A stretch of DNA of 64,000 nucleotides from IMGVR_UViG_3300046787_000286:150007-214006; one strand, 5' to 3'; shown: positions 27,069 through 49,170, counted from the first letter of the stretch. Made by a program: numbers and translations. The notes: generated by a model from the letters alone, not told the origin.

Positions 27069-27308
27069 TCAACCGCCCCATTTTAGCAGAAAAGCACAGT
27101 AATCACGCTCGTTGTCGAAGTAAAATAGGTAGCGACCATCTGCGTGATCCGAACTAACTTGTATCAATTGCCAACGCCATTCGCCTTGCATTTCTGATTC
27201 CTTGCACCAGGCGATCACTGAGTCCAGGCCGCCAAATGGTTGATGGATTTCGACTGCATGTTTAAAACTATCTTTTGCTCTTACAACTAGGTTGTCTAAA
27301 ACATTCAT
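27069..27308 (-). CDS. dispersed member of the F-x-L-[RK]-W small-protein family
   Basis: VIAWC...W.W...FYFDNERDYCAFLLKW. Confidence 0.8.
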   Translation of the reverse strand: MNVLDNLVVRAKDSFKHAVEIHQPFGGLDSVIAWCKESEMQGEWRWQLIQVSSDHADGRYLFYFDNERDYCAFLLKWGG

Positions 27309-28129: not shown

Positions 28130-28347
28130 TTTAACCTGTAAAAACTAGCCATAGCTGGATCTGCAAACTCAAATATAACTTGGCTATCAGATTCCGGGGT
28201 CGAGCTAAAACTATCGCTGTATTTAACGGGCTGAAATCTCCATGTATAATCCTGATCTACTACTAGACCTGTCCGATCCAGATCTATCTTTAATGCAATA
28301 GCTTCAGCAGCGGATAGTTTAGTAATAGTAAGAGAGTTCAGTGTCAA
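28120..28347 (-). CDS. dispersed member of the F-x-L-[RK]-W family (start uncertain)
   Basis: DYTWRF...VIFEFADPAMASFYRLKWA; probable TTG start. Confidence 0.65.
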   Translation of the reverse strand: MTLNSLTITKLSAAEAIALKIDLDRTGLVVDQDYTWRFQPVKYSDSFSSTPESDSQVIFEFADPAMASFYRLKWA

Positions 28348-28735
28348 AATCTTGTACCAAATGATCAAACGGTTGATTGAAATATCTATACACAGAACGA
28401 ATGTCATCCACATAACACTTGCTAGGGTTGCCTTCGCGAAAGGATGCCATTTCGTAAAAGAAAAACTTTTGCTTGCTTTGGCGCATTTGGCGCTTGGTGT
28501 AGTAAGATGGAAAACCTTCAAACGAATCCAGTGAGCGCTCGCATTCAGGAGTAATATCCCACAGGATTCCCCAAACAGATTCGCCAGGGCTAGGCTCCAC
28601 TGTTGCATGAGAGTAGAACTTTAGTTTCCAGCCTTGCAAAACAAACGGGCGTGGATTAGTGGCACCAGGGCAACGGCGTGCCATGCTAGCTTGACTCATA
28701 TTTGCCCCGTAGGCAAAATACAATTTCTTGGTCAT
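28319..28735 (-). CDS. gamma-glutamylcyclotransferase (AIG2-like)
   Basis: YFAYGANM...RCPGA...LDSFEGFP..Y. Confidence 0.88.
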   Translation of the reverse strand: MTKKLYFAYGANMSQASMARRCPGATNPRPFVLQGWKLKFYSHATVEPSPGESVWGILWDITPECERSLDSFEGFPSYYTKRQMRQSKQKFFFYEMASFREGNPSKCYVDDIRSVYRYFNQPFDHLVQDFDTELSYYY

Positions 28736-32289: not shown

Positions 32290-32580
32290 TTAACCTCGCA
32301 TTGCTTCTAAAGTGATCAACTTGCCCAACTCGCGCTCAAAATCCCGATCATCTGGGATAAGGTAAACTTGATTGTTACTGCGGTCACTTTTACGATCGTA
32401 TTTACGAAACGTTACAATACGCCCGCCGTGTGCCGAGTGAACTTGGATATTGAGTCCATCGCCCCAGTCACTTTCGGGTGACATACTGACTTTGGCACTT
32501 GACATGCTTCGATCATATAGTTCAGGCTCATTACCGATGTCACGCATCTTTTTAAACAAATAACGCCAAATAAACTTCAT
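32290..32580 (-). CDS. hypothetical protein
   Basis: AHGGRIV...YDRKSD; ATGA-coupled. Confidence 0.7.
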   Translation of the reverse strand: MKFIWRYLFKKMRDIGNEPELYDRSMSSAKVSMSPESDWGDGLNIQVHSAHGGRIVTFRKYDRKSDRSNNQVYLIPDDRDFERELGKLITLEAMRG

Positions 32581-33041
32581 ACTTTTGCCTTTCGATTTTT
32601 TAAATAATCTTCCCACTGCACCCACTTGTTTTTAACAAGGAATCCCCAGTCACGTTGTTTAGCGCCTGGCATGAACAAGGTCCAGCATGTTACTTCGGGG
32701 TCGAGCTCAATACGGTGGAGGCTTTTCGCCCCAGCCATCCGGAAGCTGCCCGGACCGCACCACCGAGCAATCTCGCCAATTTTCTTTCCATCGCTCCCAA
32801 ACTGCGGAGTCCATTCATAGTAGCCACCTTTTAAAATAAGTGTAGCAAAGGGCCAGGGATGATCGTGTAAGTCATCAACATCTGATTTCAAAAACTTGTG
32901 CAGGAACACGTTAAACGGAAAGTTCTCTCGATCTTTAAGAAACAAGTAGTACCGTTCCAGATATGGTTCATTGTCTACACGGTCATAAACAATGCGTTTA
33001 CGCCCACGGGCTTCCAAAAACTTTAGAAATTTTGAGAACAT
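32577..33041 (-). CDS. cupin-fold protein
   Basis: LHDHPW...LKGGYYE...HRIEL...WTLF. Confidence 0.8.
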   Translation of the reverse strand: MFSKFLKFLEARGRKRIVYDRVDNEPYLERYYLFLKDRENFPFNVFLHKFLKSDVDDLHDHPWPFATLILKGGYYEWTPQFGSDGKKIGEIARWCGPGSFRMAGAKSLHRIELDPEVTCWTLFMPGAKQRDWGFLVKNKWVQWEDYLKNRKAKV

Positions 33042-33535: not shown

Positions 33536-36500
33536 ATGGCAAACCAAATTAACATTGATATCGGTGCAGCAGCAAATGACGGCACAGGCGATCCGTTACG
33601 CACCGCGTTTAATTACGTAAACAACAACTTTTCTAACGTTTGGAATACAGGATTACCTAACTCAAACGTTCAATTTTCTGACAATAGAATTTTAACAGTT
33701 AACACCAACGCTAACTTGGTGTTGGCACCTAATGGCATTGGCAAAGTTGCATCCAACGTTGATATTGTGCCTAACACAGCTAATGTATTTGCGCTAGGTG
33801 GGGCAAGTCGTCGTTGGAACACAGTTTACGGACAGTATTTAGATTTATCGCACAATGCAGTTATTGGCGGGAATTTAGTTGTTACAGGTAACTTATCAGC
33901 AGGGAATATCAGTTACACATCTAATGTATTTGTTGGCGACCTAGAAGGATCAGTGTTCGACGGTGCTAGTTCGATTGTGTTGGATGTAATTGACAGTACC
34001 ATTTACGTAGACAACTATCGTTATGCAAATGGCGTTCCTGTTTCTTTTGGCGGCAATTATAGCAATGCAAACGTGGCAGCATATTTGCCAACTTACACTG
34101 GCAATCTCAGTGCTAATAATATCACAGCTGGCAATGTGTTCACTGCACAGACAGTAACAGCAAATGATGCATACATTAACACTGGCACCTTTGCCGGGGA
34201 TGAGAATACCGGAGACGCTGCAATGTACGTTGGATCGCCAACGTTTACTAACCTGGGCTCAGATATCATGGCCCAGTTTACAGGCAACGTAACAACCTAC
34301 GCTCAAATCAACTTGCAGAACTGGAGTAATGCTGCCACTGCATCCGGCGATTACATTTTAACAGCAGACAACGGCAACGACTCTACTCACTTCCTGGATA
34401 TGGGTATAACCAGTTCTACCTGGGACGGTACACAAACAAACGTCTTAACCGGTCTCAATCCAAACAACGGTTACTTGTATGTACAAGATGGCAACTTAAC
34501 ACTGGGCACAAGAGCAGGCAACGTAAGTTATAGCTGGAAGTTTGATACCACAGGCAACTTAACTGTGGCCGGAAACGTTATCCCCACAGGCAACAACACA
34601 CAGAGTTTAGGTAGTGCAACCCAGCAATGGAATGACTTGTATTTGTCCAATGCTACAATTTACATGAACTCTGTGCCGATCAGTTTGACTGCCGACAATG
34701 TGCTCACAGTCAATGGTGCAGATGTTGTAACAACCAACAGTGAAGGACAGGCAAACATTGGTAACCTTGACATCAACGGCACTGTTATTCAAATTGCAGA
34801 AGGTGCTTCAGAAACTCTAATCAATATTACTCCTAGTGGACCTACCGCAGGTTGGGCATATTTACAACTTCCCACAAATGGCACTGCAAATACAGCCAAC
34901 ACACGCTTGCATAACGATGCCGGCAATATAGAATTTGGTACAGGAGATTTTTCAACAGGTAGCACCAACTATACTTGGACATTTAACAACACCGGAACCT
35001 TGGTTTTTCCTGCCAACCCTAATGGTCAAATCTATGGTGGCCAAGACAACGATTTTATCATCACCACCTCCAATGCCAATGCTGCCACATACTATTTTAC
35101 TTTCAGTCAGTTAGGCGATCTCACAGTTCCTATCAATCTCAATGTGTCGGGCAATGTCTATACAAATGATATTGTAGGAGCAGGAGCTGGCAACATCACA
35201 ATCACAGCTAACACACAGTCATGGTTATTTGATGACACTGGCATGTTGACTTTGCCCAGCGAGGGTCAGATTAGATCTGTGGCCAACACTGGCATGAGAC
35301 TCAGTGCTGGTGCCAGCGATGTCACTGGCTTGTTGTTAAACAACACTGGCGATGCTGAACTCTATGCTAATGCCAATGTATCCGTATACACTGACTCTGG
35401 AAACACCGGCTGGACGTTTGACACTGCTGGTAATCTAACACTTCCTGGTAACGCTGGTGCAAACAATGCAAGCATTTCAGCAACAGTCAATGGTAGTATT
35501 CTAGGCCTAAACAGTCAGGCTAATGGTTCAGTAAGATTGAGAGCATATGGCAGTGCTGCCAACCTGGTTGCTGGCATGGCTGTGTTTGGTGAAGACGGTG
35601 AAGTTGATCGTGTTCAAATCAGCACTTATAACCCTGGCATTGATGATAACAACGCTTGGGTATTTAACACTAGTGGCGATTTAACCACGCCAGATGGTAA
35701 CATATTCTTTGGCACAGGCGCTAATAGTGCTGTTATTGTGCCAGCAGGTAATTCTGTTAAAATAGCCGCAGATCGCGGAAATACTTCAAAAAATTATATT
35801 GATATAACCAGCAGTGGAATAACCATTGATGCACTAGGTGGTTCCACTGCTGACATTAGAATAAGAGCCGCAGATGATATTTTTGTGCAAGGCGGGGACA
35901 AAACAAGTGCTCCGGGACAACGCGGTGGTGATATCAATATTGATGGTGGCCAAGGTGGCCCAGACAATGGTGTCAATGCAGGCGACGGCGGCGACATTGC
36001 CATTCAAGGTGGCCTGGGCGGCGAGATATTAGCAGGTGGATCAGGCGACGGCGGCGATGTGACACTGCTTGGTGGTACAGGTAGCACCGCCAACGTTGCT
36101 AATTTACTAGGGGCAGGCCGCGGCGGCCTGGTGGTGATACAAGGTGGTCAAGGTGGCGATCAAGCAGGCAACACTTCTCTATCAGAGCGCGGCGGCAACG
36201 TTGACATCTACGGCGGCCAAGGCAGTTTTGACTTTGCGAACACTTTGCCAAGTGGTCTTCCAGGCCATGTTAACCTCTATGGTGGCAACTGGGGATTTGT
36301 CAATGCTCCAAGTGGCAACATCTATCTCAATACCTATGACGGAACAAACTTCAAGACATTGACCTACGATACTGCTGGCAATGTCACAATGGCCGCTGGT
36401 GGTGCATTAAACATGGTGGGATCAAGTTCGGGCATTGTTCAATCGCCAAACAATGATTTGATTGTCACAGTTCAAGATGATGACAATGACGATTGGGCAT

Positions 36501-37540
36501 TATACAATCGAATCACTGACACTGGCGCAACATTGGGCGAAACAAGACTACGCCGTGGCGATTTTCGAATTGATTTTCCTGGTGTGTCAAAGACCTTTAC
36601 CTTTGATGATAGTGGTGTACTTAGTTTACCCGGTGATATTGCTTCTAGCACTCAAGGCGGAGATATCAGTCTTTATGCAATCGACGATGGCGACAGTGGA
36701 TCTGCAGAGATAAAAACTATCAGTTTTGCTGGTAGTACGCTAGGTAGTAATGTCAGAGTAACCCAAAGCAACGCCACTATTTCGACCAGTAACGCTGCAT
36801 ACACCTGGACATTTGATAACACTGGTAATCTAACAGTTCCAGGAAACACCATTGTTTCCACAGCCAATGCCACAGGCGGTCTAGGTGGTAAGAGCGTAAG
36901 CATTACTGCTGGCGCCAGTGACGCAGTTACTTGGAATTCAAACCCAGGTGGCAATGTAAACATCACAGGCGGATACGGCTCGTTTGGCGGCGGCGGCGGC
37001 GGTCCTGGTGGTAATGTTAATATCACAAGTGGTGGTAGTTCAGATAGCCATGCAGGCAATGTAACTATCAATTCCGGCGCTAATGCATGGAACTTTGATT
37101 ACACCGGTAATTTAGACGCCCCGGGTAATATTACATCCACTAACTTTGTCGGCAACGGCGCAGCATTGACCAATGTTGCTACACAAGTAACAGGTTCCTG
37201 GACATTAGCCGCAGGGACAAACACTGCAAATATTACAGTTCCGCCAAACGGTACTTACACAATCTGGGTCAATGGAAACATTCCAAACGGTATTGCAGTA
37301 TGGAACGCTACTGTAACTATTACCAACAATAACGTGCCAGTAATTGGACAACAATTTGCTTGGAATTATTCTGGTAATGCGTTGGTGATTACTTCAATTC
37401 CATCACAGATCATTGGAACAGCAGGTGCTATTAGTAATGCATCACCGGCTGTTGGCACAACTACCAATGTGTTTGAGTTCAGCATTGACAACAACAGTGG
37501 TAATAGTCAGACTGTGGACTACGGATGGACTAAACTTTAA
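33536..37540 (+). CDS. long tail fibre / adhesin-like virion protein
   Basis: gp9/gp10-like N-terminus (IGAAANDGTGDPLRTAF), ten W-x-F-D-x-x-G-x-L-T-like repeats, Gly-rich repeats; 1334 aa. Confidence 0.85.
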   Translation: MANQINIDIGAAANDGTGDPLRTAFNYVNNNFSNVWNTGLPNSNVQFSDNRILTVNTNANLVLAPNGIGKVASNVDIVPNTANVFALGGASRRWNTVYGQYLDLSHNAVIGGNLVVTGNLSAGNISYTSNVFVGDLEGSVFDGASSIVLDVIDSTIYVDNYRYANGVPVSFGGNYSNANVAAYLPTYTGNLSANNITAGNVFTAQTVTANDAYINTGTFAGDENTGDAAMYVGSPTFTNLGSDIMAQFTGNVTTYAQINLQNWSNAATASGDYILTADNGNDSTHFLDMGITSSTWDGTQTNVLTGLNPNNGYLYVQDGNLTLGTRAGNVSYSWKFDTTGNLTVAGNVIPTGNNTQSLGSATQQWNDLYLSNATIYMNSVPISLTADNVLTVNGADVVTTNSEGQANIGNLDINGTVIQIAEGASETLINITPSGPTAGWAYLQLPTNGTANTANTRLHNDAGNIEFGTGDFSTGSTNYTWTFNNTGTLVFPANPNGQIYGGQDNDFIITTSNANAATYYFTFSQLGDLTVPINLNVSGNVYTNDIVGAGAGNITITANTQSWLFDDTGMLTLPSEGQIRSVANTGMRLSAGASDVTGLLLNNTGDAELYANANVSVYTDSGNTGWTFDTAGNLTLPGNAGANNASISATVNGSILGLNSQANGSVRLRAYGSAANLVAGMAVFGEDGEVDRVQISTYNPGIDDNNAWVFNTSGDLTTPDGNIFFGTGANSAVIVPAGNSVKIAADRGNTSKNYIDITSSGITIDALGGSTADIRIRAADDIFVQGGDKTSAPGQRGGDINIDGGQGGPDNGVNAGDGGDIAIQGGLGGEILAGGSGDGGDVTLLGGTGSTANVANLLGAGRGGLVVIQGGQGGDQAGNTSLSERGGNVDIYGGQGSFDFANTLPSGLPGHVNLYGGNWGFVNAPSGNIYLNTYDGTNFKTLTYDTAGNVTMAAGGALNMVGSSSGIVQSPNNDLIVTVQDDDNDDWALYNRITDTGATLGETRLRRGDFRIDFPGVSKTFTFDDSGVLSLPGDIASSTQGGDISLYAIDDGDSGSAEIKTISFAGSTLGSNVRVTQSNATISTSNAAYTWTFDNTGNLTVPGNTIVSTANATGGLGGKSVSITAGASDAVTWNSNPGGNVNITGGYGSFGGGGGGPGGNVNITSGGSSDSHAGNVTINSGANAWNFDYTGNLDAPGNITSTNFVGNGAALTNVATQVTGSWTLAAGTNTANITVPPNGTYTIWVNGNIPNGIAVWNATVTITNNNVPVIGQQFAWNYSGNALVITSIPSQIIGTAGAISNASPAVGTTTNVFEFSIDNNSGNSQTVDYGWTKL

Positions 37541-37752
37541 GCCCACCGTAAGTTAAACCAGGCACGGTCTTGGTCGTTGAGCACTCGCCACACGTCAAAA
37601 CCACCAAGTGTGCCTTGGTATTCAATTGTGATGCTATTCTCACCTGCCCACTCATACACTTCTTGACGCTTTGAGTACGGTGTTGCAATATCACGAGCAT
37701 CACTCATGAACACATATCCACGATCGTCACGAGCAAACTCTTTGAGTGCCAT
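37537..37752 (-). CDS. array member 17 (71 aa)
   Basis: Ends NDQDRAWFNLRWA. Confidence 0.8.
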   Translation of the reverse strand: MALKEFARDDRGYVFMSDARDIATPYSKRQEVYEWAGENSITIEYQGTLGGFDVWRVLNDQDRAWFNLRWA

Positions 37753-37973
37753 TACTGCCACCTCATTGCAAACACTGCGGCTTTTTTAGAGCAGTCGAAT
37801 TTCCACTCTGGATTACCGATCCATCGCGGATCGTGCCATCCGTCGTCTACACAAGGGCCAAAGTTCTTTTGACACCATTCAAACATCTCCATGTAGTGGT
37901 GCCAGTCTCGTGTGGGTACATTAATAATGTATTTCCACTTTCGTCGATCTTTTCTACGTTGATGACTATTCAT
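37752..37973 (-). CDS. array member 16 (73 aa)
   Basis: MNSHQRRK...EWCQKNFG...AAVFAMRWQ. Confidence 0.8.
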   Translation of the reverse strand: MNSHQRRKDRRKWKYIINVPTRDWHHYMEMFEWCQKNFGPCVDDGWHDPRWIGNPEWKFDCSKKAAVFAMRWQ

Positions 37974-38203
37974 TTCCATCTCAGCAAGAACATTGTGTAG
38001 GATTTTTCATCCGGGAACTCAACCATCATTTCCTTGCTCAAGCCATACTTGCCGCCAAACGAGCCAGCACGAACTTTGCGAGCACCGTAGTCACGGGCTA
38101 GCACATCCCAGATACTCATGTGGGTACCGTTGGCGGGTTGATCAAACTTTTCCCAATACCAGTCGGCAATTTTTTTAAAATAGGGTTCGATGTTTACTCT
38201 CAT
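37970..38203 (-). CDS. array member 15 (77 aa)
   Basis: Ends FPDEKSYTMFLLRWK. Confidence 0.8.
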   Translation of the reverse strand: MRVNIEPYFKKIADWYWEKFDQPANGTHMSIWDVLARDYGARKVRAGSFGGKYGLSKEMMVEFPDEKSYTMFLLRWK

Positions 38204-38595
38204 GACGTATATTTTAACGCAATCATCATAGCGTCCCTTTCATCGTTTGTTGCCACAAATACTTTATCTCTATCACCCATTCCGTTAATGTCCCATTCCC
38301 CAGTCCATTGGTTCCACATGACTCGTTCAAATTGCCAAACGCAAGTGTTAGTAACTGGACGCTGTGGCCAAAAATATTGCCTAGCATCTTCGCATGGCAC
38401 ATAAGCAAATGGTTCGCATATATCAAAGAACTTGTTTGGGCTGACTATGATAACATGTTTAAAGTTTTGGAACATGTTAGGGATTGTGCTAGCACGATAG
38501 ACTACATTCTCTTCGTACCACGCTTCCCACTCTCGTGTAGCCTTGTCCTTACCGGTACGCCAGGTTAGCCACCGGTCTTTGATCCATTCAATCAT
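38200..38595 (-). CDS. array member 14 (131 aa)
   Basis: Ends NDERDAMMIALKYTS. Confidence 0.75.
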   Translation of the reverse strand: MIEWIKDRWLTWRTGKDKATREWEAWYEENVVYRASTIPNMFQNFKHVIIVSPNKFFDICEPFAYVPCEDARQYFWPQRPVTNTCVWQFERVMWNQWTGEWDINGMGDRDKVFVATNDERDAMMIALKYTS

Positions 38596-38774
38596 GACCA
38601 TTTCAACTTATATACGATGTAAATATCTTCGTCCATGTAGATATTGTCTAGCCCGTAGTCATACTGTGTACCCCAACGACGACCTTCTGGACCAAAGTTG
38701 AGCCCTAGCCAATGTCGTACCTCACTCTTACGAACTGCTGGCCAGTTCTCAATTGCTATTCCGTATTGCTTCAT
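38592..38774 (-). CDS. array member 13 (60 aa)
   Basis: WLGLNFG...EDIYIVYKLKWS. Confidence 0.8.
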   Translation of the reverse strand: MKQYGIAIENWPAVRKSEVRHWLGLNFGPEGRRWGTQYDYGLDNIYMDEDIYIVYKLKWS

Positions 38775-38775
38775 G

Positions 38776-38997
38776 TTACATCTTTAACAAAAACATCATG
38801 TAGTCCTTTTCTTCTTTGAACACAATGTAGTTCTTGTCTTTGCGCCAACTAAACTCTTGGTCACCGTTGTACTCTGCTTTAACAAACTGCCAAAAGCTCT
38901 TGCTGTACACGCCCTTGCCGCGACTAAGCATTGCATCAACGATTCTTGCACTGTATTCCTCTGCAAGTACCCTGTGTTTTTTGCGGAATACGTTCAT
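38776..38997 (-). CDS. array member 12 (73 aa)
   Basis: Ends FKEEKDYMMFLLKM. Confidence 0.8.
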   Translation of the reverse strand: MNVFRKKHRVLAEEYSARIVDAMLSRGKGVYSKSFWQFVKAEYNGDQEFSWRKDKNYIVFKEEKDYMMFLLKM

Positions 38998-39281
38998 AGC
39001 CATTTCAACTTTATAAACGTCATCAAGTCCTCGCGCACATGATAGATAGCACGATGTCGCTCACCGGAGGCTTCCCATTGTTCATCTTTAGTGCCATTAG
39101 CTTCGATCCAGTCTCCGAACCAGTAACTGCAATTTAAGCGATACCAAAGGATCCCGTCATTACGATCGTGTGGGTAGAAACCGACTTCTCCCCCGAGCTC
39201 GTAGTGATATAACTTGTCGCCGTATAGCGGATCACCTTCAATCGGACGCTTTCTGTAAACCCATTTTTGAAAATCTCCCAT
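38994..39281 (-). CDS. array member 11 (95 aa)
   Basis: Ends EDLMTFIKLKWL. Confidence 0.8.
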   Translation of the reverse strand: MGDFQKWVYRKRPIEGDPLYGDKLYHYELGGEVGFYPHDRNDGILWYRLNCSYWFGDWIEANGTKDEQWEASGERHRAIYHVREDLMTFIKLKWL

Positions 39282-39481
39282 TATGCAAACCTCAACTTAA
39301 ACCACATTAGATCTTTCTTGCGCTTGAAGTAGATTTCATCACTAAAGTGATAGTAGTGCCAATTTTTACGCAGGAAGTTTTCGTTGCAAAAAGCAAAGTG
39401 CTGTTCTCTTTCGGTAGGGTGTGTTGGCACACAATGCTTGAACTTTTCTTCATACGTGCCGTAATCAACAATCAGTGTCAT
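39281..39481 (-). CDS. array member 10 (66 aa)
   Basis: Ends YFKRKKDLMWFKLRFA. Confidence 0.8.
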   Translation of the reverse strand: MTLIVDYGTYEEKFKHCVPTHPTEREQHFAFCNENFLRKNWHYYHFSDEIYFKRKKDLMWFKLRFA

Positions 39482-39708
39482 GACCACTTCAGTGCAAAGT
39501 ACACTGCATCTTTTTGCTCACTAAATTTAAACTCAGCGTGAGACCACCCATTCTCGTTTTTCCAACTGCCTTTGCAATTTTTCCTACACCAACGAGCTGC
39601 TAGTTCAACCTTTTGGTCATGCTCGAAGTAGCGTTTTTGTTCGGCAGTGCGAAGTGTGATAATGTGAGGATGCTCACGTTTTGCTTTGCGTCTTTGTGCT
39701 GAATTCAT
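39478..39708 (-). CDS. array member 9 (76 aa)
   Basis: MNSAQRRK...WCRKNC...QKDAVYFALKWS. Confidence 0.8.
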   Translation of the reverse strand: MNSAQRRKAKREHPHIITLRTAEQKRYFEHDQKVELAARWCRKNCKGSWKNENGWSHAEFKFSEQKDAVYFALKWS

Positions 39709-39953
39709 GATGCCCACTTTAATACAAACGCGGTATGACTGGATTCTTTATCCCACCGCAAATACCAACCTTGTGTTTTTGTGATAACAAGTTTGCCCCC
39801 AAGCGGCCTAAGTTGATAGTTCATAACAGTTGCAGTAGACCAGCCATTTGTACGAGCAATCCCTTGGCAATGTTCCAAGAAGTTATCAAACCACTTAGGG
39901 CTGTCATCTTTCCAATAGCTTTTTAAAATAGTAACACGAAATTTATCAGGCAT
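39705..39953 (-). CDS. array member 8 (82 aa)
   Basis: Ends ESSHTAFVLKWAS. Confidence 0.8.
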   Translation of the reverse strand: MPDKFRVTILKSYWKDDSPKWFDNFLEHCQGIARTNGWSTATVMNYQLRPLGGKLVITKTQGWYLRWDKESSHTAFVLKWAS

Positions 39954-40147
39954 TATTTCCACCTCAACATAAACCACTCTGCGTCTTGTTTACGCTCAAA
40001 CTTAACAGCCGTGCTTGAGCGATGAATATGATACATACCTTTGCTGTCGTGTGTCCGCAACCATTCCCACTGGTCGTTATTCAACGGCCGTTTTAACAGA
40101 ACATTCGTCCAGTCTTTTGTATTGTGCGAATCTGGCGTGTGAATCAT
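39953..40147 (-). CDS. array member 7 (64 aa)
   Basis: Ends FERKQDAEWFMLRWK. Confidence 0.8.
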   Translation of the reverse strand: MIHTPDSHNTKDWTNVLLKRPLNNDQWEWLRTHDSKGMYHIHRSSTAVKFERKQDAEWFMLRWK

Positions 40148-40602
40148 GACCACTTCAACTTATAAAACACAAAATCTTTTTCATCGCGGAAGTGAATTTC
40201 TCCGACACCAACCCACCAACGACTCCACGCATCTGGTTTGTCGGGGTGCTTTCCGAACTGCTCGGTACACCATTCGATGATTTCGTTATACTCACGGCCT
40301 AGACGCCAGATGCCATTGCCAATGTCAACAGTGTGCCACTTAGCACGGCTAAATTGGTATTTGGGTTTTGTAACAGGATGCATTGGCAAGAAAATTTCCT
40401 TACATAAGTTAGAACCCATTACAGAAACGCTTCGCTGTTTCAATGCTGAATAGTAGTATAAAGAAATCAGACTCTTACCAGTTTGTCGACCACCGGAGAA
40501 AATCATCATTTCACTAGGATGAATACCGCCAGTAGTATTACTTAATACCGTTGGCGTCAGGGCGTCCCAAGCTTCGAGATCAACTATTGTTTTATTTTTC
40601 AT
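40144..40602 (-). CDS. array member 6 (152 aa) with N-terminal helicase-like P-loop remnant
   Basis: TGGIHPSEMMIFSGGRQTGKS ... EWCTEQFG...FRDEKDFVFYKLKWS. Confidence 0.8.
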   Translation of the reverse strand: MKNKTIVDLEAWDALTPTVLSNTTGGIHPSEMMIFSGGRQTGKSLISLYYYSALKQRSVSVMGSNLCKEIFLPMHPVTKPKYQFSRAKWHTVDIGNGIWRLGREYNEIIEWCTEQFGKHPDKPDAWSRWWVGVGEIHFRDEKDFVFYKLKWS

Positions 40603-40811
40603 GACCACCTCAGTATAAACCAATTGCGTGTTTTTTCATCGGGAAATGCCACCACTATTTGCTGGCTGGCTGCGCTGCCAAAGGTGTGGCTAATACCATA
40701 CTCGCGGTCAAGCCAATCCCAGATACTAACATTGGACTTGTATGGGTTATCCCAATAGTGATTAGCGACCTTCTTGAAGTAGGGATAGATGTCTGCATAG
40801 ATTTTAGTCAT
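40599..40811 (-). CDS. array member 5 (70 aa)
   Basis: Ends FPDEKTRNWFILRWS. Confidence 0.8.
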   Translation of the reverse strand: MTKIYADIYPYFKKVANHYWDNPYKSNVSIWDWLDREYGISHTFGSAASQQIVVAFPDEKTRNWFILRWS

Positions 40812-41020
40812 GACCACCTCAGTACAAATAACACAGCATCCTGTTTGGATCTAAAATGCCACACAGTTTGGTCCCGGCGAAACATAGCACCCCTGTAGTC
40901 TTCTTGACAGTTTTGTTTGCACCACACAAACCTCTCGTCCTTGCCCCATACCCAACCACCTGAATGTGGTACTTCCACACGATGCTGGAGATCTCGGCTG
41001 CGACTGTATTTTGCTGTCAT
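40808..41020 (-). CDS. array member 4 (70 aa)
   Basis: WCKQNC...FRSKQDAVLFVLRWS. Confidence 0.8.
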   Translation of the reverse strand: MTAKYSRSRDLQHRVEVPHSGGWVWGKDERFVWCKQNCQEDYRGAMFRRDQTVWHFRSKQDAVLFVLRWS

Positions 41021-41202
41021 AACCACTTCAATGCAAACATTGTAGCATCTTTTTCATGTTGAAAGTTAAATGTAACATACTGTCGTTTATCAATAACTTC
41101 CCATGTGCGATTAAGCAAGTTCATGCCATGCTCTTGTGCCCATTCCTGGCGCTCTGACACTTCAATGATATTGCGACATGCAACAGTTACAGGATACCAC
41201 AT
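41017..41202 (-). CDS. array member 3 (61 aa)
   Basis: Ends FQHEKDATMFALKWL. Confidence 0.8.
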   Translation of the reverse strand: MWYPVTVACRNIIEVSERQEWAQEHGMNLLNRTWEVIDKRQYVTFNFQHEKDATMFALKWL

Positions 41203-41393
41203 TACGACCACCTCAATGCAAATAGCACAGCACTCGCTTGCTCGTTAAACTTGAAAATAAAATCTGCTTTTCCAGCAGCCATGCCATAAGTCCAATCTCT
41301 TTGCCATTGAAAATCGTTGTCTACTTCGAGCCAGTCAAATACATCGGGTAACACTTTGTCCCGTGGGAGCTTGATTGAAACATCGTAAGTCAT
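41202..41393 (-). CDS. array member 2 (63 aa)
   Basis: Ends FNEQASAVLFALRWS. Confidence 0.8.
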   Translation of the reverse strand: MTYDVSIKLPRDKVLPDVFDWLEVDNDFQWQRDWTYGMAAGKADFIFKFNEQASAVLFALRWS

Positions 41394-41632
41394 GACCACC
41401 TCAACAAAAACAATGTGTAGTCTTTTTCATTTTCAAAATAAACAGTTTCGTTCCGCCAAAACCAGTATACATAACCAAAGGCGTCACGGCACCATTGAAC
41501 TATTTCGTTAAATGGCGCAGAACCGTTATACTGCCAAACGTATACTTTCGACGTGCTTACAGCCCCCACGGAACCGGAAGCCGGAACAAGTGCAGTTGAA
41601 ATTTCCACTATTCTCTGTGACTTTGTATTCAT
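41390..41632 (-). CDS. array member 1 (start uncertain, overlaps SWIM gene)
   Basis: QWCRDAFG...FENEKDYTLFLLRWS. Confidence 0.75.
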   Translation of the reverse strand: MNTKSQRIVEISTALVPASGSVGAVSTSKVYVWQYNGSAPFNEIVQWCRDAFGYVYWFWRNETVYFENEKDYTLFLLRWS

Positions 41633-41882
41633 CGCCTTTGCTACCTTTCACAACCCACATACGACCTAGGGGCTCATCCTCTTTGAGTTTTGTTTTAAAC
41701 TGCACAGGATTCACAATAAACTTGCGGCCACGAGTTTCAATCTTGATGGGATTCCGGAACACTTTGATGTCGCCTGTGCCCCGGGGTTTGAAAGCATACA
41801 TCTTGACCTTGGCATCATCCAGCAAGTAGATACCGTTGGGAACAGAGTCCTTGTAGTCAGTTGTTTCAGCAAACCATTTCAT
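41526..41882 (-). CDS. SWIM zinc-finger protein
   Basis: V.GSKG..Y.V...CTCSGF.FRG.CKH. Confidence 0.85.
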   Translation of the reverse strand: MKWFAETTDYKDSVPNGIYLLDDAKVKMYAFKPRGTGDIKVFRNPIKIETRGRKFIVNPVQFKTKLKEDEPLGRMWVVKGSKGDEYKVTENSGNFNCTCSGFRFRGGCKHVESIRLAV

Positions 41883-42515: not shown

Positions 42516-42544
42516 ATTATAGCAAATCGGTAATTTTTGGTCAA
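42516..42544 (-). promoter_or_regulatory. sigma70 early promoter driving the operon that contains the array
   Basis: TTGACC-17-TATAAT, close variant of the 42-bp repeat. Confidence 0.85.
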
Positions 42545-42818: not shown

Positions 42819-42876
42819 ATTATAGCAAAACGGAAAATTCTGGTCAACCAAGCAAAATGTAATACTTTTGTAATAC
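42819..42876 (-). promoter_or_regulatory. early promoter with palindrome
   Basis: TTGACC-17-TATAAT; GTAATACTTTTGTAATAC at 42859-42876. Confidence 0.85.
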
Positions 42877-42925: not shown

Positions 42926-43303
42926 ATGAACTCCAGAGAATACGCAAAATTTAAAAGACTGTTTGTTGGGCCAATTATGCCAAGAAAAGTAGTCAAAGAA
43001 AGATTTTATAGTGTAATGCCTACAAAATCAAATCCTCGGCCCTTGTTAGAAAAGGGAGATGTTAGAAAGTTGTGGGACAGAGCCGCGGTGCGTAGATATG
43101 CTACTCCTTCTTGGGCTGACAAAAATCAAATTGATCAACTATACACTGAGGCTAGAAAACTAACACTAGAAACTGGAATACCACACGAAGTTGATCATAT
43201 TATACCTGTCAAGCATCCTTTGGTATGTGGGCTACATGTAGAAACTAATTTACGTATTCTATCAGGAACTGTAAACAATAAAAAATCAAATTTTTATAAT
43301 TAA
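42926..43303 (+). CDS. HNH endonuclease
   Basis: ATPSWAD...HEVDHIIP...VCGLHVETNL...N.KKSN; TAAATA 5 nt upstream. Confidence 0.88.
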   Translation: MNSREYAKFKRLFVGPIMPRKVVKERFYSVMPTKSNPRPLLEKGDVRKLWDRAAVRRYATPSWADKNQIDQLYTEARKLTLETGIPHEVDHIIPVKHPLVCGLHVETNLRILSGTVNNKKSNFYN

Positions 43304-43612: not shown

Positions 43613-43854
43613 GGTTCTAACAACCAACCCTGCCCGCTTGCTCGATGATACCAGCGGTAAAAAGGCTCAGATATAATTAATTTTCCATCTACAGCCATAT
43701 ACGAGTATTTGGGCAGTATTTCTATTCTATCTATTACAACCGCATCGTTGGCAGAAAATGATAATATATCGTGAAGGCCAGCTTCATGTTCTATTCCATT
43801 TATAACAACAGTTAACGTTGGCTCAGTAGCCAGCAGTTCTGAAAAGTTCTTCAT
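43606..43854 (-). CDS. hypothetical protein
   Basis: PFYRWYH..SGQGWLL.P; coupled to the radical SAM gene. Confidence 0.65.
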   Translation of the reverse strand: MKNFSELLATEPTLTVVINGIEHEAGLHDILSFSANDAVVIDRIEILPKYSYMAVDGKLIISEPFYRWYHRASGQGWLLEPQ

Positions 43855-45094
43855 ATTCGGGTAGGTAGGTTAAGACAGAGTTTCCTCTGTTGGATTCAAG
43901 CTGCTTCAAGTATTTGACCAAGTCTGGCAAGCGCCAACTTTCATCTGGTTCAGTACTTAGATAATTTACGTAACTTTGTAAGTCTTGCACCAATTGTGCT
44001 TGCACAGTGTTGGGATTTCTAATGTTCACTATTTGATCGCTTGTGATCATATGAGCATCGATCCAGGCTTGCATTTTATCTATAATCTGTTGTCTATAAC
44101 TCATTGGCAATACTGAAGGTTTTAGAACTTCCGGTCTATATAAAAAATTACAGCTTTCAACGATAATGCTATGTGCTAGTGCATAATCGTATATAGGAAG
44201 CAGTGTATGAACAGTCAAACAAGTAGGCGTTGTTCTAAATTGCATTAACCATTTGAGTTCATTGGCTACTGTTTTCCATCGTTCTAGATTTTCAAACACT
44301 GTTGGCAAGCATACTGGCCAACGAACATAGTCGTTGATAATGCTAAAACTTTCAACACTGAATCCAAGATTAACACCCTTGAATTGTTTAAGTAAATCAA
44401 CAATATCATTGTCCCATACTGACAGATTAGTAGTGAACCCAATGGTTGCATTTGTGTTTAGCCCTGCGTCAACTAGTGCTTGTAGGATAATTCTAAACGC
44501 CGGGGTAATTAATGTTTCGCCGCCAATAAAGTGCAAATACTGTATATGTGGACTTTGCTTTAATGTGTTGATAAATTTCTGAACTAATAAAGGATCATCG
44601 CTCCAGTTAGCAGGTGGCATCTCAGTGATGAACCCAATTTTTTTCCATTCAGCAGCAAGGCGTGAACTTGACTCTGGTCTGCAAAAGACGCAGGCACTGT
44701 TACAAAAATTTCCCAAATCTATTTGCCAATCTTGTGGGTACTGGCTACACTTACTGTCGCCAAATGTAGACACCCATGGGCTGCTTGCTAACGTTTTTTC
44801 AAACTCATCTAGTCTAACTCCAACTTTGAGTAACTGTTTTTGCCTGCCGCTGATTTTATCATGCTTTTCCATGCTGCGACAAGTGTGGCATCCTGCAGGG
44901 CTTGCGCCTTGCAGTAACTCATTTCTCAGGGGTTGCATTATTGTTTGAAAATAATCAACTGGATCAATATCTCTAATATTGTGAGTGCGCGGGGATTGGG
45001 CCCAGCGACAATACTCAAAATCACCAGAATTTGTTATTCTCATGTGAATCCAAGGGCTTGAGCAAAAGTTATTTTTGATATTGTTCTCTGACAT
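43823..45094 (-). CDS. radical SAM enzyme with twitch-like domain
   Basis: CSSPW...YC...CHTC; CNSACVFC; GGET; TTN. Confidence 0.9.
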   Translation of the reverse strand: MSENNIKNNFCSSPWIHMRITNSGDFEYCRWAQSPRTHNIRDIDPVDYFQTIMQPLRNELLQGASPAGCHTCRSMEKHDKISGRQKQLLKVGVRLDEFEKTLASSPWVSTFGDSKCSQYPQDWQIDLGNFCNSACVFCRPESSSRLAAEWKKIGFITEMPPANWSDDPLLVQKFINTLKQSPHIQYLHFIGGETLITPAFRIILQALVDAGLNTNATIGFTTNLSVWDNDIVDLLKQFKGVNLGFSVESFSIINDYVRWPVCLPTVFENLERWKTVANELKWLMQFRTTPTCLTVHTLLPIYDYALAHSIIVESCNFLYRPEVLKPSVLPMSYRQQIIDKMQAWIDAHMITSDQIVNIRNPNTVQAQLVQDLQSYVNYLSTEPDESWRLPDLVKYLKQLESNRGNSVLTYLPEYEELFRTAGY

Positions 45095-47003: not shown

Positions 47004-48572
47004 ATGATGCGCGACTTACTTAACATTCTTGACAAAATAACCCTTACTGAAGGTGTGGGATTAACTAACCGTAAACCTGGCGAAAAATTCAAAAATCATG
47101 TGGATGACATTGTGTCGTACCAGAACATGGAATTTTATCCAGACTCAGGCCGATACGAAACCCCAGACGAACTAGCACAGGCCAAAACCTCAGTTGAGCA
47201 GTCTGGTAGAAACATACACTGGATCAATCAACCTAACTCATCAACTGGTGGATTCATGATTGCCACGTTCACTGGCGAAGATGGAAAAGAATATTATCTA
47301 GGCAAATGGGTCAAAGCAATTAGTCCAAACAAGGCCCTGAACAATTTTGCGCACAATGAGATTCCCGGTGGATTCAAGTTCCAAAGCAAGGCAGGGCAAA
47401 AGGAAAACTCTGGACTCAAGCCCAGTGAGTGGTTAGAGCAATATCAAAACAACACTCCACAAACAATTTTAGATCAAGCCCGCAAGGCATTTGGACCAGA
47501 CAGCGCAGAAGCTCAAGCACTGGCAACATTTATTAACGGAGATATTCCAGTGGAAGTTGCCCGTGGTAACATGAACGCTACTGCCTTCCGCGATTACTTT
47601 GCTGAGGTACTACAGCCTATTGCACTAGTGCTAGGTAAAAAAGTATCCGGTAATGCCGCAGAAGCGGCTCAAATCTTCTTTGGTCCAGGTGCTGATTACT
47701 CAGATTGTACAATTAGTTTCAACAACAATACCATTGGTGGCCTGTACGATTCCTTGTTGGTTAACCCCGAAGGTAAACAGATCAAGCTGTCGAGCAAAGG
47801 TAAAGATGGCGCTAACGCATCAGTTACTAACTTGATTAAATCTGTACAAGAACTTGAAAAAGTACCTGCAGGTAAAAAGCTCAAGGCCACATTTGCCGAA
47901 GAAATAGAAATGTTGACCAACATTGAAAAACTGGGACACTTCGGTGCTCCTATTGCTATTGCCGAAAAGTACGGAATTATCGACCAAGGCGACGGAGCAA
48001 GAGTTATGCAGTTAAAAAATCTGGGTCCCAACGATGATGTTACTGGTATCTTGAGCAAGAAGCTACAGGCGTTGTACAATGACCGCAAAGCCAAGGACAT
48101 GGGACGCATTATCCCGGCTGAACACATGATTGCTGCCATTGCTTACAAAGTTGCCGATTATGTTAACAAGAACACACGCTTTGGCGAAGCAGCTTCTTCT
48201 ATCCTAAACAACGCGGCACTGGTACAAATGTATACAAACACTACCGACACTGCTGATACAATTACTATTACTAAACTAGAAGCAGTATACCCATCGCAGA
48301 CAGTTACAGGTGTGCTGCTAGATGCTACCAAGGCTTACATGAGCACACAAGGCAAAGGTAACTTTACATTTAAGATCTTGAAGAATGGTGCCAAGCCAAC
48401 TGATGTAAACGACATCGACGGAATGGATAGTTTAGAAGAGCCCGGGGTAGATACATCTAATCCAGACGAGTTAGACGCTGCTACACAACGTAGAAGTTCT
48501 GTAAAAGCAGCTGGAGCAGCACCTGAGAAATTAGGGTCTAAACAAAGTTTAGGTAGAGCACGTCAACGCTGA
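47004..48572 (+). CDS. 522-aa protein with PD-(D/E)xK-like nuclease motif; probable late/virion protein
   Basis: FAEV..P...LYDS...IKLSSK; TAAGTA upstream; leader ending LTE. Confidence 0.6.
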   Translation: MMRDLLNILDKITLTEGVGLTNRKPGEKFKNHVDDIVSYQNMEFYPDSGRYETPDELAQAKTSVEQSGRNIHWINQPNSSTGGFMIATFTGEDGKEYYLGKWVKAISPNKALNNFAHNEIPGGFKFQSKAGQKENSGLKPSEWLEQYQNNTPQTILDQARKAFGPDSAEAQALATFINGDIPVEVARGNMNATAFRDYFAEVLQPIALVLGKKVSGNAAEAAQIFFGPGADYSDCTISFNNNTIGGLYDSLLVNPEGKQIKLSSKGKDGANASVTNLIKSVQELEKVPAGKKLKATFAEEIEMLTNIEKLGHFGAPIAIAEKYGIIDQGDGARVMQLKNLGPNDDVTGILSKKLQALYNDRKAKDMGRIIPAEHMIAAIAYKVADYVNKNTRFGEAASSILNNAALVQMYTNTTDTADTITITKLEAVYPSQTVTGVLLDATKAYMSTQGKGNFTFKILKNGAKPTDVNDIDGMDSLEEPGVDTSNPDELDAATQRRSSVKAAGAAPEKLGSKQSLGRARQR

Positions 48573-49135
48573 GTTAGGTCTGAAATGTAATTGCAGATTC
48601 TCAATTGAACTGCTTCTTCTGCACTAAGGTAAACATCTTGTGGAGGAAGCAGTTTTTCTTTTATAGTTTTTTCGTCTAGTCCAGTTGCCAACTTGTAATG
48701 TGCTAGCATGCGTTCGTGAACTAAATTAAACTCTTTTGTAACTGCCCATAGTTCGTGGTGCTTGCCTTCGCTTCCCCAGGAGTACTGGTGGCTTAGTATA
48801 CTGGTATTTGGTGTTAATATGCGGGGCTTGCCTGCTAAGAATATCATCAATCCTGCTGATGCAATTTGCCCTAGTCCCACAGTTTTAACAGGAATCAAGC
48901 TGCTTCGTATTACATCGATTAGTGCAAATGCAGATTCGAGCTCCCCGCCTGAGCTGCAAATCATTAACAGTAATTCTTTTTTCTTCTTTTTAACCACATG
49001 ATTCTCTGCCAGAATCCACTCTATAATAGGCTGTATTGACTCTTCGTCAACTTCGCCCATGAAGACATACATCCCGTTGTCTTGCAGTTGTTCCGAATGT
49101 GATCTTGATTCTGGTAGGTCTTTTTCTTGTGGCAT
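48563..49135 (-). CDS. clpP: ClpP protease subunit
   Basis: ICSSGG, GQIASAG (Ser), SHQ (His), DVYLSAEEA (Asp). Confidence 0.92.
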   Translation of the reverse strand: MPQEKDLPESRSHSEQLQDNGMYVFMGEVDEESIQPIIEWILAENHVVKKKKKELLLMICSSGGELESAFALIDVIRSSLIPVKTVGLGQIASAGLMIFLAGKPRILTPNTSILSHQYSWGSEGKHHELWAVTKEFNLVHERMLAHYKLATGLDEKTIKEKLLPPQDVYLSAEEAVQLRICNYISDLTQR

Positions 49136-49170
49136 AATAAGTAACCGGTTACCCAATTACTTATCATGTA

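Follow-up and report, generated by a model that had tools for sequence, protein, structure and literature searches.

The minus strand of the window (here the whole 64,000-nucleotide stretch that was analyzed, IMGVR_UViG_3300046787_000286:150007-214006), DNA of a jumbo phage, carries, at 37537–41632, 17 contiguous genes of one family that encode proteins of 60–152 amino acids, with no unrelated gene between them in the ORF listing. Sequence comparison shows that these genes make up one translationally coupled run and that their products are members of a single domain family that is restricted to phages and arrayed in many related giant phages. The family protein most likely serves as a scaffold without enzymatic activity, and we tentatively propose, as the best explanation of the array, that this binder scaffold has been expanded into a coupled library, transcribed by host RNA polymerase, for host takeover or counter-defense.

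Results

Layout of the array

An earlier sequence-only reading of this DNA had described 17 consecutive small paralogs of 60–152 residues, and the ORF listing bears this out when the true ATG starts are taken at the ATGA overlaps. The genes and nearby features are listed below (E, leave-one-out HMM E value unless stated otherwise; percentages, identities; L numbers, related loci).

42819–42847 (−): second sigma70-like promoter, same motif; 11/12 matches plus TG extension
42516–42544 (−): sigma70-like extended −10 promoter, nearest upstream of the array-containing operon; 11/12 matches plus TG extension
41526–41882 (−): SWIM-type zinc-finger ORF, 118 aa, directly upstream; shares 107 nt with gene 1; synteny kept in L001 (83%) and L004 (46%)
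41390–41632 (−): array gene 1, 80 aa; E 5.5e-8; overlapped at its 5′ end by the SWIM-type ORF; orthologs P0001 (84%) and L001 (65%)
41202–41393 (−): array gene 2, 63 aa; E 2.1e-5; start ATGA-coupled
41017–41202 (−): array gene 3, 61 aa; ORF plus leave-one-out HMM; ortholog in L009 (94–98%, dN/dS 0.03)
40808–41020 (−): array gene 4, 70 aa, WC..NC type; E 2.3e-10; orthologs in five loci (78–89%, dN/dS 0.10–0.17)
40599–40811 (−): array gene 5, 70 aa; 39% identical to its paralog, gene 15
40144–40602 (−): array gene 6, 152 aa; widest conservation of all members; family domain at residues 86–152
39953–40147 (−): array gene 7, 64 aa; E 3.4e-6
39705–39953 (−): array gene 8, 82 aa, divergent; E 0.19; F-V-L-K-W end kept; orthologs in the L007 and L008 arrays (60–69%)
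39478–39708 (−): array gene 9, 76 aa, pI 9.9; E 2.1e-8
39281–39481 (−): array gene 10, 66 aa; C terminus LRFA; ortholog in L001 (78%, dN/dS 0.08)
38994–39281 (−): array gene 11, 95 aa, divergent; E 0.012; orthologs in the L007, L008, and L010 arrays (48–53%)
38776–38997 (−): array gene 12, 73 aa; E 4.2e-6; C terminus LLKM
38592–38774 (−): array gene 13, 60 aa; ORF plus leave-one-out HMM; ortholog in L008 (70%, dN/dS 0.09)
38200–38595 (−): array gene 14, 131 aa, 10 Trp; most divergent, internal insertion; E 0.34
37970–38203 (−): array gene 15, 77 aa; E 6.5e-6
37752–37973 (−): array gene 16, 73 aa; source of the first structure prediction
37537–37752 (−): array gene 17, 71 aa, last of the array; terminal Arg is CGG, not AGG; no start after it
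28120–28608 (−): possible dispersed member; HMM E 0.011; only the C-terminal part family-like; end F-Y-R-L-K-W-A
27069–27308 (−): dispersed family member, 79 aa; HMM E 5e-7; joined by an ATGA overlap to the S11 carboxypeptidase gene that precedes it; L004 and L011 orthologs at 55–58%

A strict F-x-L-[RK]-W end is found in 14 of the 17 array genes, and the other three have degenerate ends (Y-K-L-K-W in genes 6 and 13, I-A-L-K-Y in gene 14); in all 17, the terminal motif is followed by 0–2 residues and then the stop codon. In the leave-one-out HMM test, 11 of the 17 score at E ≤ 2e-5, one further gene in the range of 3.4e-6 to 6.5e-6 is grouped with these strong members, three lie at E 0.0025–0.012, and genes 8 and 14 are the weakest. 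The divergent genes 8 and 11 have orthologs within the arrays of other phages at 47–69% identity. The predicted pI of the array members runs from 4.5 to 9.9, and no surface feature that would point to one class of partner is shared among them. Two dispersed members had also been claimed; the one at 27069–27308 is clear, and that at 28120–28608 is a weak match only. The 3′ end of the array is convergent with a 1334-aa plus-strand ORF (33536–37540), the two stops overlapping at 37537–40, as had been noted earlier, but the tail-fiber label that came with that observation is without database support.

Coupling and transcription

The last-helix codons (TTG AGG TGG xCA TGA) serve at the same time as a ribosome-binding site and the overlapping start of the next gene. 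Part of the constancy of the C terminus at the DNA level therefore arises because these codons double as a Shine-Dalgarno site and an ATGA start. Among 516 family junctions, 304 have the ATGA overlap and 81 a TAATG or TGATG overlap. AGG makes up 2.7% of the Arg codons in the window, whereas 7 of 10 terminal Arg codons in the array are AGG, as are 79% of those across 367 coupled family ORFs. Even gene 14, with the C terminus D-E-R-D-A-M-M-I-A-L-K-Y-T-S, has an ATGA-coupled junction.

Between 37.5 and 41.6 kb, there is no strong promoter (≥10/12 matches) and no terminator signal, and the region-wide counts are at chance (16 promoter-like sites against 13.9 expected; 5 terminator-like sites against 5.8). 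Near the array, the repeated promoter motif is confined to the upstream positions 42.5 and 42.8 kb. These are the two sites that had been called early sigma70 promoters. As consensus matches to strong, host-type sigma70 promoters they are present, but the motif has 19 copies in the window against 1.7 expected and also precedes many other minus-strand genes; thus, the attribute "early" does not single out the array.

The conserved domain

The family unit is a compact domain of ~60 residues, predicted to be a two-layered beta-alpha-beta-beta-alpha fold in the 2 of 17 members that were modeled (genes 6 and 16), and it is for these two that the proposed shared fold is upheld. The model of gene 16 has a pLDDT of 82, with strands at 17–20 and 58–61 and helices at 26–40 and 64–74. 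The family signature is ..W-C-x-x-x-F-G..W..F-x-F-x-x-E-x-D-A-x-x-F-x-L-[RK]-W-x-stop. The sequence-only reading had recognized the W-C...F-G segment and the terminal helix; both are there, but they are not separate modules, and the whole ~60-residue domain is conserved. Conservation is limited to core aromatic and aliphatic positions (W, W, F, F, L, W) plus two polar exceptions, the [RK] just ahead of the last Trp (92%) and, at lower conservation, the Asp of the E-x-D-A turn (68%). Among the conserved positions, there is no candidate for a catalytic constellation, and the protein is therefore most likely a non-enzymatic scaffold. Conservation of core residues only is also what would be expected of a binding scaffold.

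The F-x-L-[RK]-W end had been taken for a docking or oligomerization tag. In both models, however, the last 11 residues are the final helix of the fold (pLDDT about 91–93). The domain itself is always found at the very C terminus; of 652 family ORFs, 567 have no more than one residue between its end and the stop. We also considered and rejected an ssrA-like degron or docking tag, which would be a short, unstructured, separable peptide; the models predict a terminal helix, and its F, L, and W are core-type residues.

The family has no assigned function, as had been supposed. Neither the array members nor the family sequences match PHROGs v4, NCBIfam, or PADLOC. The 17 members and 118 family sequences give only single, chance-level matches in Pfam-A (best E 0.016), a PDB profile search gives at best a YdhG-like protein at E 0.72, and Foldseek against the PDB gives a nonsignificant best E of 0.5. 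The matches from a viral structure library are all uncharacterized phage proteins (top E 1.5e-4, TM 0.78).

Relatives in other phages

The family HMM hits 652 ORFs across 65 loci, each on the array strand, with zero off-strand false positives, and metagenomes hold ~984 family clusters at 50% identity. There are 59 non-redundant related loci, many on contigs of 100–374 kb, with up to 27 copies per 20 kb, and the cultured jumbo phage Phosso of Sinorhizobium has at least 13 family members. Phages related to the array carriers have T4-type capsid and helicase sequences.

The content of the array is not invariant among relatives. Related loci hold 11 to 27 members each, in shuffled order and differing membership, between flanks of 60–90% identity; L001, for example, has 11 members against the 17 in the window, with flanks at 66–89%. 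Between the window and L009, dS is 0.20, 0.42, and 1.08 for three cassettes. The members had been described as hypervariable, which is misleading: the paralogs are old (14–39% identity), and orthologs are under purifying selection, with dN/dS of 0.03–0.19. Variation in the family lies in the presence or absence of cassettes, which are gained, lost, reordered, and exchanged between phages while being individually kept by purifying selection.

Fusions to pieces of phage core proteins

Two fusions, to a gp23 fragment and to a helicase Walker-A segment, are the sole direct hints at partners. In relatives of the array, a recurrent subfamily carries the fragment of the T4-type capsid protein gp23: of 108 long members, 19 match the Gp23 profile of Pfam (PF07068) at positions 2–56, with E values down to 2e-12; no window member does. 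These positions correspond to residues 74–130 of JSE gp23, and because the match is confined to them, the proteins carry fragments and are not capsid proteins. The fragment spans the segment of gp23 to which Gol maps, presumably T4 residues 93–122, and the exact overlap depends on that assumed position. Gol comprises 29 residues within the first quarter of gp23 and is the most conserved region of the protein; as an isolated peptide, it binds EF-Tu and activates the abortive-infection protease Lit (PMC3014915). The likeness to the Gol/Lit system is thus one of related phages (JSE ~74–130), whereas the window lacks the fusion.

Residues 1–85 of gene 6 are an N-terminal extension that is predicted to be disordered (AF2) and that contains a copy of the Walker-A segment of phage-type replicative helicases (GGIHPSEMMIFSGGRQTGKSLI). 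In at least 17 loci, gp41-like helicases are matched by this arm at residues about 167–209; the similarity is short, extending over some 30 residues (E about 1e-4 to 2e-5). Gene 6 as a DnaB/gp41-like helicase, which would have a full RecA-like ATPase domain with Walker A, Walker B, and arginine finger, was rejected, as only these ~30 Walker-A strand and loop residues are present and the rest of the arm is predicted to be disordered. The gene 6 group has a dN/dS of 0.15–0.19. A further family member, P0053, has a polymerase motif-B-like stretch.

Discussion

What the array may do

In the explanation that we tentatively favor, each cassette would be a small binder that owes its specificity to a variable surface or an N-terminal extension, the array would be a library of such binders translated from host-polymerase transcripts, and the binders would engage host proteins, or host proteins that sense the phage, to bring about takeover or counter-defense. 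The strong purifying selection on orthologs counts against this reading, being unlike what is usual for arms-race proteins. No match to anti-defense homologs was found in PHROGs, which holds some such families.

The recognizable fused pieces all come from phage core proteins (gp23, the helicase Walker-A segment, and the motif-B-like stretch of P0053), and the gene 6 group is the most widely conserved and is itself under constraint. These observations would fit a domain that binds assemblies of the phage itself (capsid protein, replicative helicase, perhaps polymerase), either to regulate or chaperone assembly and replication or to poison the homologous machines in co-infecting related phages (inter-phage exclusion). 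We give this some weight but think it unlikely, as 15 of the 17 window members are without such an extension and a buried P-loop strand would be an odd interaction epitope.

The cassettes could also be largely selfish and prone to recombination, bringing the phage little benefit and using the conserved 15-nt junction (TTGAGGTGGTCATGA) as microhomology when they are duplicated, shuffled, or transferred; the fused fragments would then be by-products of illegitimate recombination. Such cassettes would account for the shuffled order and differing content among relatives, the unequal dS between cassettes of one phage pair, a junction conserved in 516 ORFs, and the joining of internal fragments of other genes to the domain. 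We regard this as distinctly unlikely, because selection at the protein level is strong over the whole dN/dS range given above, there is no nuclease or recombinase domain, and the gp23 and helicase fusions, the only two types that recur, are old, widespread, and conserved, not random debris.

It seems quite improbable to us that the members are small nucleic-acid-binding proteins with an RRM- or ferredoxin-like half fold, such as RNA chaperones or regulators of transcription or translation. The N-terminal tails of genes 4, 9, and 16 are basic (pI 9.4–9.9), and the weak fold neighbors include RRM-like, polymerase-palm, and ribosomal-protein folds, but none of the PDB fold matches is significant, six members are acidic or near neutral (pI 4.5–6.5), and no basic residue other than the [RK] next to the last Trp is conserved. 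Least probable by far is that a constant C-terminal peptide serves phage ClpP/ClpS or a host complex as a docking tag or degron, with the variable bodies as cargo or adaptors: a ClpP homolog does lie nearby (48563–49156), as it does near the arrays in L001, L003, and L004, but the motif is predicted with high confidence to be a helix that packs within the fold, conservation in it falls on core-type hydrophobics, its role as ribosome-binding site and start accounts for much of the constancy of the DNA, ClpS was not found, and nothing links the family to ClpP or ClpS.

Comparison with known systems

The internal-protein (IP) loci of T-even phages also combine a constant short element with very different bodies in cassettes that vary between relatives, and at least one of their products, IPI, is an anti-restriction protein. 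There, the constant element is a peptide at the N terminus that targets the protein to the capsid and is removed by cleavage. We rejected an array of this type, as the N termini of the array proteins are variable, the constant part is the C-terminal helix of the fold, and packaging is not indicated. The host-range families of poxviruses and ASFV, which act on host defenses, are likewise arrays of diverged paralogs whose copy number changes from strain to strain, but these families are unrelated in host, fold, and size, and their genes are not translationally coupled.

In the hyperplastic regions of T4-type phages, small ORFs, mostly of unknown function, lie between core blocks with host-type early promoters and are shuffled by PeSL promoter/stem-loop elements (PMC2839356, PMC4122927). 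In both, content and order vary between related phages. The array ORFs, however, are paralogs of a single domain, and in place of a promoter or stem-loop between ORFs, as in PeSL cassettes, they have stop/start overlaps, with the conserved sequence within the coding region.

Lineage-specific expansions are described in a survey of jumbo phages, in the searched passages of which the array family does not appear; Bacillus phage G, for instance, has about 35 copies of a zinc ribbon (PMC7824862). The two cases are alike in that one small domain is present in tens of copies in a giant phage genome with a proposed binding or regulatory role. The array domain differs in having another fold and no metal-ligand pattern, and the expansion of the array family is clade-wide, with conserved orthologous cassettes.

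Array of small proteins with a common C-terminal domain

The ORF listing gives 17 consecutive minus-strand ORFs at 37537–41632, with no unrelated gene between them. Most of the called starts are GTG codons that lie 2–3 codons 5′ of an ATG, and in most array genes this ATG overlaps the preceding stop codon as ATGA; once the ATG starts are used, the proteins are 60–152 aa long. A form of F-x-L-[RK]-W, with 0–2 residues after it, closes all 17 proteins, which also share a W-[CL]-x-x-x-F-G segment and, in the centre, an aromatic residue. When an HMM built from 16 of the genes was used to score the seventeenth, 11 of the 17 scored at E ≤ 2e-5, four at E 0.0025–0.012 or slightly better, and genes 8 and 14 were clearly weak (E 0.19 and 0.34). 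Orthologs of genes 8 and 11 are present within arrays of other phages. The ORF listing and HMM thus confirm the run of 17 small paralogs with a common C-terminal end that was proposed in the sequence-only reading. That reading also named two dispersed members, of which the family HMM upholds the first and leaves the second doubtful.

Dispersed family members and the gene between them
27069–27308, minus strand: family member, clear
28120–28608, minus strand: family member, doubtful
27305–28129, minus strand: S11 D-Ala-D-Ala carboxypeptidase (Pfam, E 1e-42)

The carboxypeptidase gene has one of these on either side, the stops and starts of all three genes overlap, and the layout is the same in the related loci L001 and L004.

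In a set of 1.84 billion representative proteins, a profile built from the 17 genes matched 984 clusters at E ≤ 1e-3, nearly all of them proteins of 50–160 aa in which the matched part is C-terminal. The consensus of a 118-sequence alignment is W-C-x-x-x-F-G ... W ... F-x-F-x-x-E-x-D-A-x-x-F-x-L-R-W. In 589 sequences of the family, conservation is confined to the columns W (95%), C (60%), W/Y/F (97%), F (89%), D (68%), F (90%), L (96%), R/K (92%), and W (92%), and all other columns are near random. Such a pattern fits a folded scaffold that lacks a catalytic centre. When the sequences were clustered by single linkage at 40% identity, 285 of them fell into a single chained cluster, and the result showed only that there are 137 clusters and 84 singletons.

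An AlphaFold2 model of gene 16 (37752–37973) on the 118-sequence alignment, with pLDDT 82, has the topology strand-helix-(short strand)-strand-helix, and its last helix, residues 64–74, is among the highest-confidence parts. In gene 6 (40144–40602), modeled on an alignment of its own orthologs, residues 86–152 have the same topology at pLDDT 83–92, and residues 1–85 are predicted to be disordered.

The family has no real match in Pfam, PHROGs, NCBIfam, or PADLOC, nor one in the PDB, where a profile search gave nothing better than E 0.72 and Foldseek with the model gave a best E of 0.5; this bears out the earlier statement that no function is assigned. Weak single Pfam matches (DUF3841, Gp11_C, TreK, RII_binding, and others) were discarded as chance, and a YdhG-like/DUF1801 lead, at the nonsignificant E of 0.72, was dropped. 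In a viral structure library, Foldseek matched only uncharacterised phage proteins, with weaker matches in Agrobacterium phage Atu_ph07, rhizobial T4-like phages, and other phages. No description of the family was found in the literature searched.

The conserved end and the gene junctions

The domain stops 0–1 residue before the stop codon in 567 of 652 family ORFs. At the gene end, the DNA reads TTG AGG TGG xCA TGA; in 304 of 516 nonredundant ORFs the stop and the ATG that follows form an ATGA overlap, and in 81 more they overlap as TAATG or TGATG. GAGGTGG stands about 5 bases 5′ of that ATG, the position of a Shine-Dalgarno sequence. The terminal conserved Arg is AGG in 7 of 10 window cases, and AGG makes up 2.7% of Arg codons in 21 long window ORFs. 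Among 367 coupled family ORFs, AGG accounts for 79% of the terminal Arg cases, and the 11 uncoupled cases are too few to split constraint on the protein from constraint on ribosome binding. Gene 17, the last in the array and without a successor, has CGG as its terminal Arg codon and ends GCT TAA.

From the place of the helix in the predicted fold, together with the Shine-Dalgarno-like codons and the ATGA overlap, we take the end motif to be a core helix of the modeled domain, the codons of which also appear to serve as ribosome-binding site and start context of the next cistron. The motif had earlier been called a constant C-terminal tag, and neither its predicted structural role nor its apparent service to the next gene's start agrees with a detachable tag.

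Selection and turnover of the cassettes

Paralogs within the window are 14–39% identical, and orthologs in other phages are 55–98% identical with dN/dS of 0.03–0.19. By these comparisons, the array genes are real and individually constrained. Since giant phages spend several kb on the family and each cassette is under purifying selection, the family must be useful.

Array content and order differ strongly among relatives; the invariant content that would have spoken against the sequence-only reading is not seen. The flanks of L001 are common with the window (radical SAM 66%, SWIM 83%, downstream block 45–90%), and its array has 11 members vs 17 in the window, with only about 6 clear orthologs. 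In the related loci L008 and L009, orthologs of genes 3, 4, and 6 stand in different orders. Measured between the window and L009, the dS of genes 3, 4, and 6 is 0.20, 0.42, and 1.08, respectively, and these unequal values indicate that cassettes are exchanged between phages.

Transcription and neighboring genes

Putative array promoters and adjoining genes
42516–42544, minus strand: TTGACC-N17-TATAAT sequence match with TG extension
42819–42847, minus strand: TTGACC-N17-TATAAT sequence match with TG extension
42926–43303, strand opposite to the array: HNH/endonuclease VII-like gene, just upstream of the array promoters
41526–41882, minus strand: SWIM-type zinc-finger ORF, with C-x-C...C-x-H at its C-terminus
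33536–37540, plus strand: Gly/Asn/Thr-rich repetitive ORF, 1334 aa

Both promoter matches belong to a longer motif with an extended −10, TTGACCAAAATTGCCCGATTTGCTATAAT, of which the window has 19 copies (2307–55435) vs 1.7 expected, nearly all on the minus strand; sites include 12803, 13770, 17441, 20428, 23563, 23831, 27044, 42516, 42819, 50886, and 52119. This motif may be the early-promoter cassette of the phage and as such a counterpart of the promoter portion of T4-type PeSLs. Five small genes lie between the promoters and the array. Since the promoters are upstream and promoter-like and terminator-like sites inside the array are at chance level, the array is probably the distal part of a host-polymerase transcript of about 5 kb, with a timing of expression that we infer.

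One of the five genes, the SWIM-type ORF, shares 107 nt with gene 1 (41390–41632), read in a different frame. L001 conserves both reading frames, at 83% (SWIM) and 65% (gene 1). The depressed dS of gene 1, with dN/dS of 0.63, is of the kind expected where an overlap truly codes in both frames.

At the other end, the stop of the 1334-aa ORF overlaps the stop of gene 17. Searches of Pfam, PHROG, PDB, and a phage database gave no match for this ORF and so no confirmation of the tail fibre that it had been called, and at the same position the syntenic L001 and L004 have a short minus-strand gene or nothing. The window also carries a set of auxiliary genes that is unusual for a phage.

Auxiliary genes of the window
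17730–19256: radical-SAM protein
43823–45094: radical-SAM protein
48563–49156: ClpP homolog
32577–33041: cysteine-dioxygenase-like protein
58637–59878: UDP-glucose dehydrogenase

Distribution

A search with the gene 6 subfamily recovered 60 IMG/VR loci, many on contigs of 100–374 kb, and several further metagenome contigs; all recovered loci have one-strand runs of family genes, up to 27 per 20 kb. The window itself is the final 64 kb of the 214,006-bp contig UViG_3300046787_000286. A near-identity search of the array DNA against 50,697 phage records gave no match, and tblastn with genes 6 and 16 and the consensus-like protein P0130 gave nothing useful. With protein P0059, tblastn gave a single weak match, which led to the cultured Sinorhizobium phage Phosso (PV764938, 469 kb). 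In a 40-kb stretch of Phosso (94297–134449) there are at least 13 members, in small clusters close to Clp-family ATPase, DnaJ-like, and GroES genes; all are annotated hypothetical and end ...A-M-L-F-K-L-T-W-S.

Among 185,579 bacterial and archaeal genomes scanned there was no true match: the sole locus returned, L066 (65% GC, Opitutae MAG), is not a family member, so nothing in these genomes points to a home of the family in cells or prophages. T4 has no member by the family HMM (88% of the genome scanned). The gp23-type fragments and gp41-like helicases of relatives would fit the T4-related "group 2" jumbo phages of PMC7824862, a placement that comes from the relatives' loci, no capsid or helicase gene being identified in the window.

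Fusions to capsid and helicase segments

Among 108 nonredundant members of at least 100 aa, 19 match Pfam Gp23 positions 2–56, with E down to 2e-12 and above the gathering cut-off. PHROG 138, the major head protein, is matched by 18, and these 108 showed no further recurrent fused family.

gp23 chimeras (T4-type major capsid protein fragment of about 50 residues joined to the family domain)
L007, 6306–6719
L008, 8280–8630
L009, 8444–8839
Further loci: L019–L021, L023, L024, L027, L033, L039, L041, L044, L046; also protein P0030

In each of the closest relatives (L007, L008, and L009) there is both a chimera and a gene 6 ortholog; the window has no chimera. By tblastn, the gp23-like segment aligns with residues 74–130 of phage JSE gp23, and it contains the ..GVQPM.. 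motif. We take the Gol peptide to be T4 gp23 residues 93–122. According to a review (PMC3014915), Gol comprises 29 residues within the first quarter of gp23, is the part of that protein that is most conserved, binds EF-Tu, and activates the abortive-infection protease Lit. The fragment in the chimeras spans the conserved segment where Gol maps and recurs in many related jumbo phages.

Gene 6 of the window carries GGIHPSEMMIFSGGRQTGKSLI, a helicase Walker-A-like segment. In at least 17 loci, an HMM of gene-6-type arms alone matched residues ~167–209 of a ~480-aa protein (E 2e-5 to 1e-4), which a match to PDB 8dtp (E 1e-24) identifies as a gp41/DnaB-like replicative helicase. The common pattern, GG[FI]xxGE[LM]xIFxGGxxxGKSL, reaches beyond the P-loop. 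Because there are only two recurrent fusion types, both widespread and conserved, these are not random debris. In one relative's protein (P0053), a K-x-x-x-N-S-x-Y-G stretch matches DNA polymerase B profiles at E ~1e-3.

The Walker-A-like segment is also present in small ORFs at L003:11251–11829, L001:16586–16906, L021:9002–9391, L062:10532–10912, and L036:4861–5211, one of which has it twice and some of which were not detected as family members. These ORFs suggest that the segment moves as an independent module.

Discussion

We conclude that the family is a new, large, phage-only mini-domain, most likely non-enzymatic, whose genes lie in arrays of translationally coupled cassettes with turnover between phages. 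Its roughly 1000 clusters (50% identity) and its tens of copies in a single genome place it among the larger uncharacterised phage families, and its carriers are a clade of giant phages whose relatives have T4-type capsid and helicase sequences. The apparently dual-coded last helix is of general interest because it links the sequence of the protein with the structure of the operon and possibly with the recombination of cassettes.

The old, conserved fusions to short capsid and helicase pieces are the only functional hints and a concrete entry point to function. The reading that we favor, tentatively and at somewhat less than even likelihood, is that the proteins are small binders of host components in infection, for takeover or counter-defence, and that some present peptides copied from conserved phage proteins. 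It is a good deal less probable that the family modulates the capsid or replication machinery, to which the fused pieces belong, of its own phage or of competing phages. Less probable again, the cassettes would be largely selfish shuffling units; the exchange and reordering of cassettes speak for this and the purifying selection on each of them against it. Nucleic-acid binding by the modeled scaffold seems unlikely, and a ClpP-docking tag, given a last helix that is predicted to lie in the fold, is highly improbable.

A further and more novel reading is a modular "bait display" for counter-defence, which we consider rather unlikely. A stable C-terminal scaffold would present to host sensors copies of the phage's own peptides, on disordered N-terminal arms or variable surfaces. 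The peptides would be the most conserved ones of its essential proteins, such as the Gol-containing gp23 segment, the helicase Walker-A segment, and the polymerase motif-B-like stretch. Translated from host-polymerase transcripts at a time when the real proteins have yet to build up, such decoys would occupy or mis-trigger host sensors of those proteins, e.g., Lit-like or other abortive-infection systems. If so, the array would be a record of the sensors met by the phage lineage. Phosso, which grows on the harmless laboratory bacterium Sinorhizobium meliloti, is a usable experimental system, and the small, confidently predicted domain is open to direct study.

Systems of this general kind have been described before: large phages have lineage-specific expansions and hyperplastic regions made up of small accessory genes (PMC2839356, PMC4122927, PMC7824862). 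What is new relative to that kind is the domain itself, absent from curated libraries and from the literature searched, along with its obligatory C-terminal placement with dual-coded junctions and its fusions to capsid and helicase fragments.
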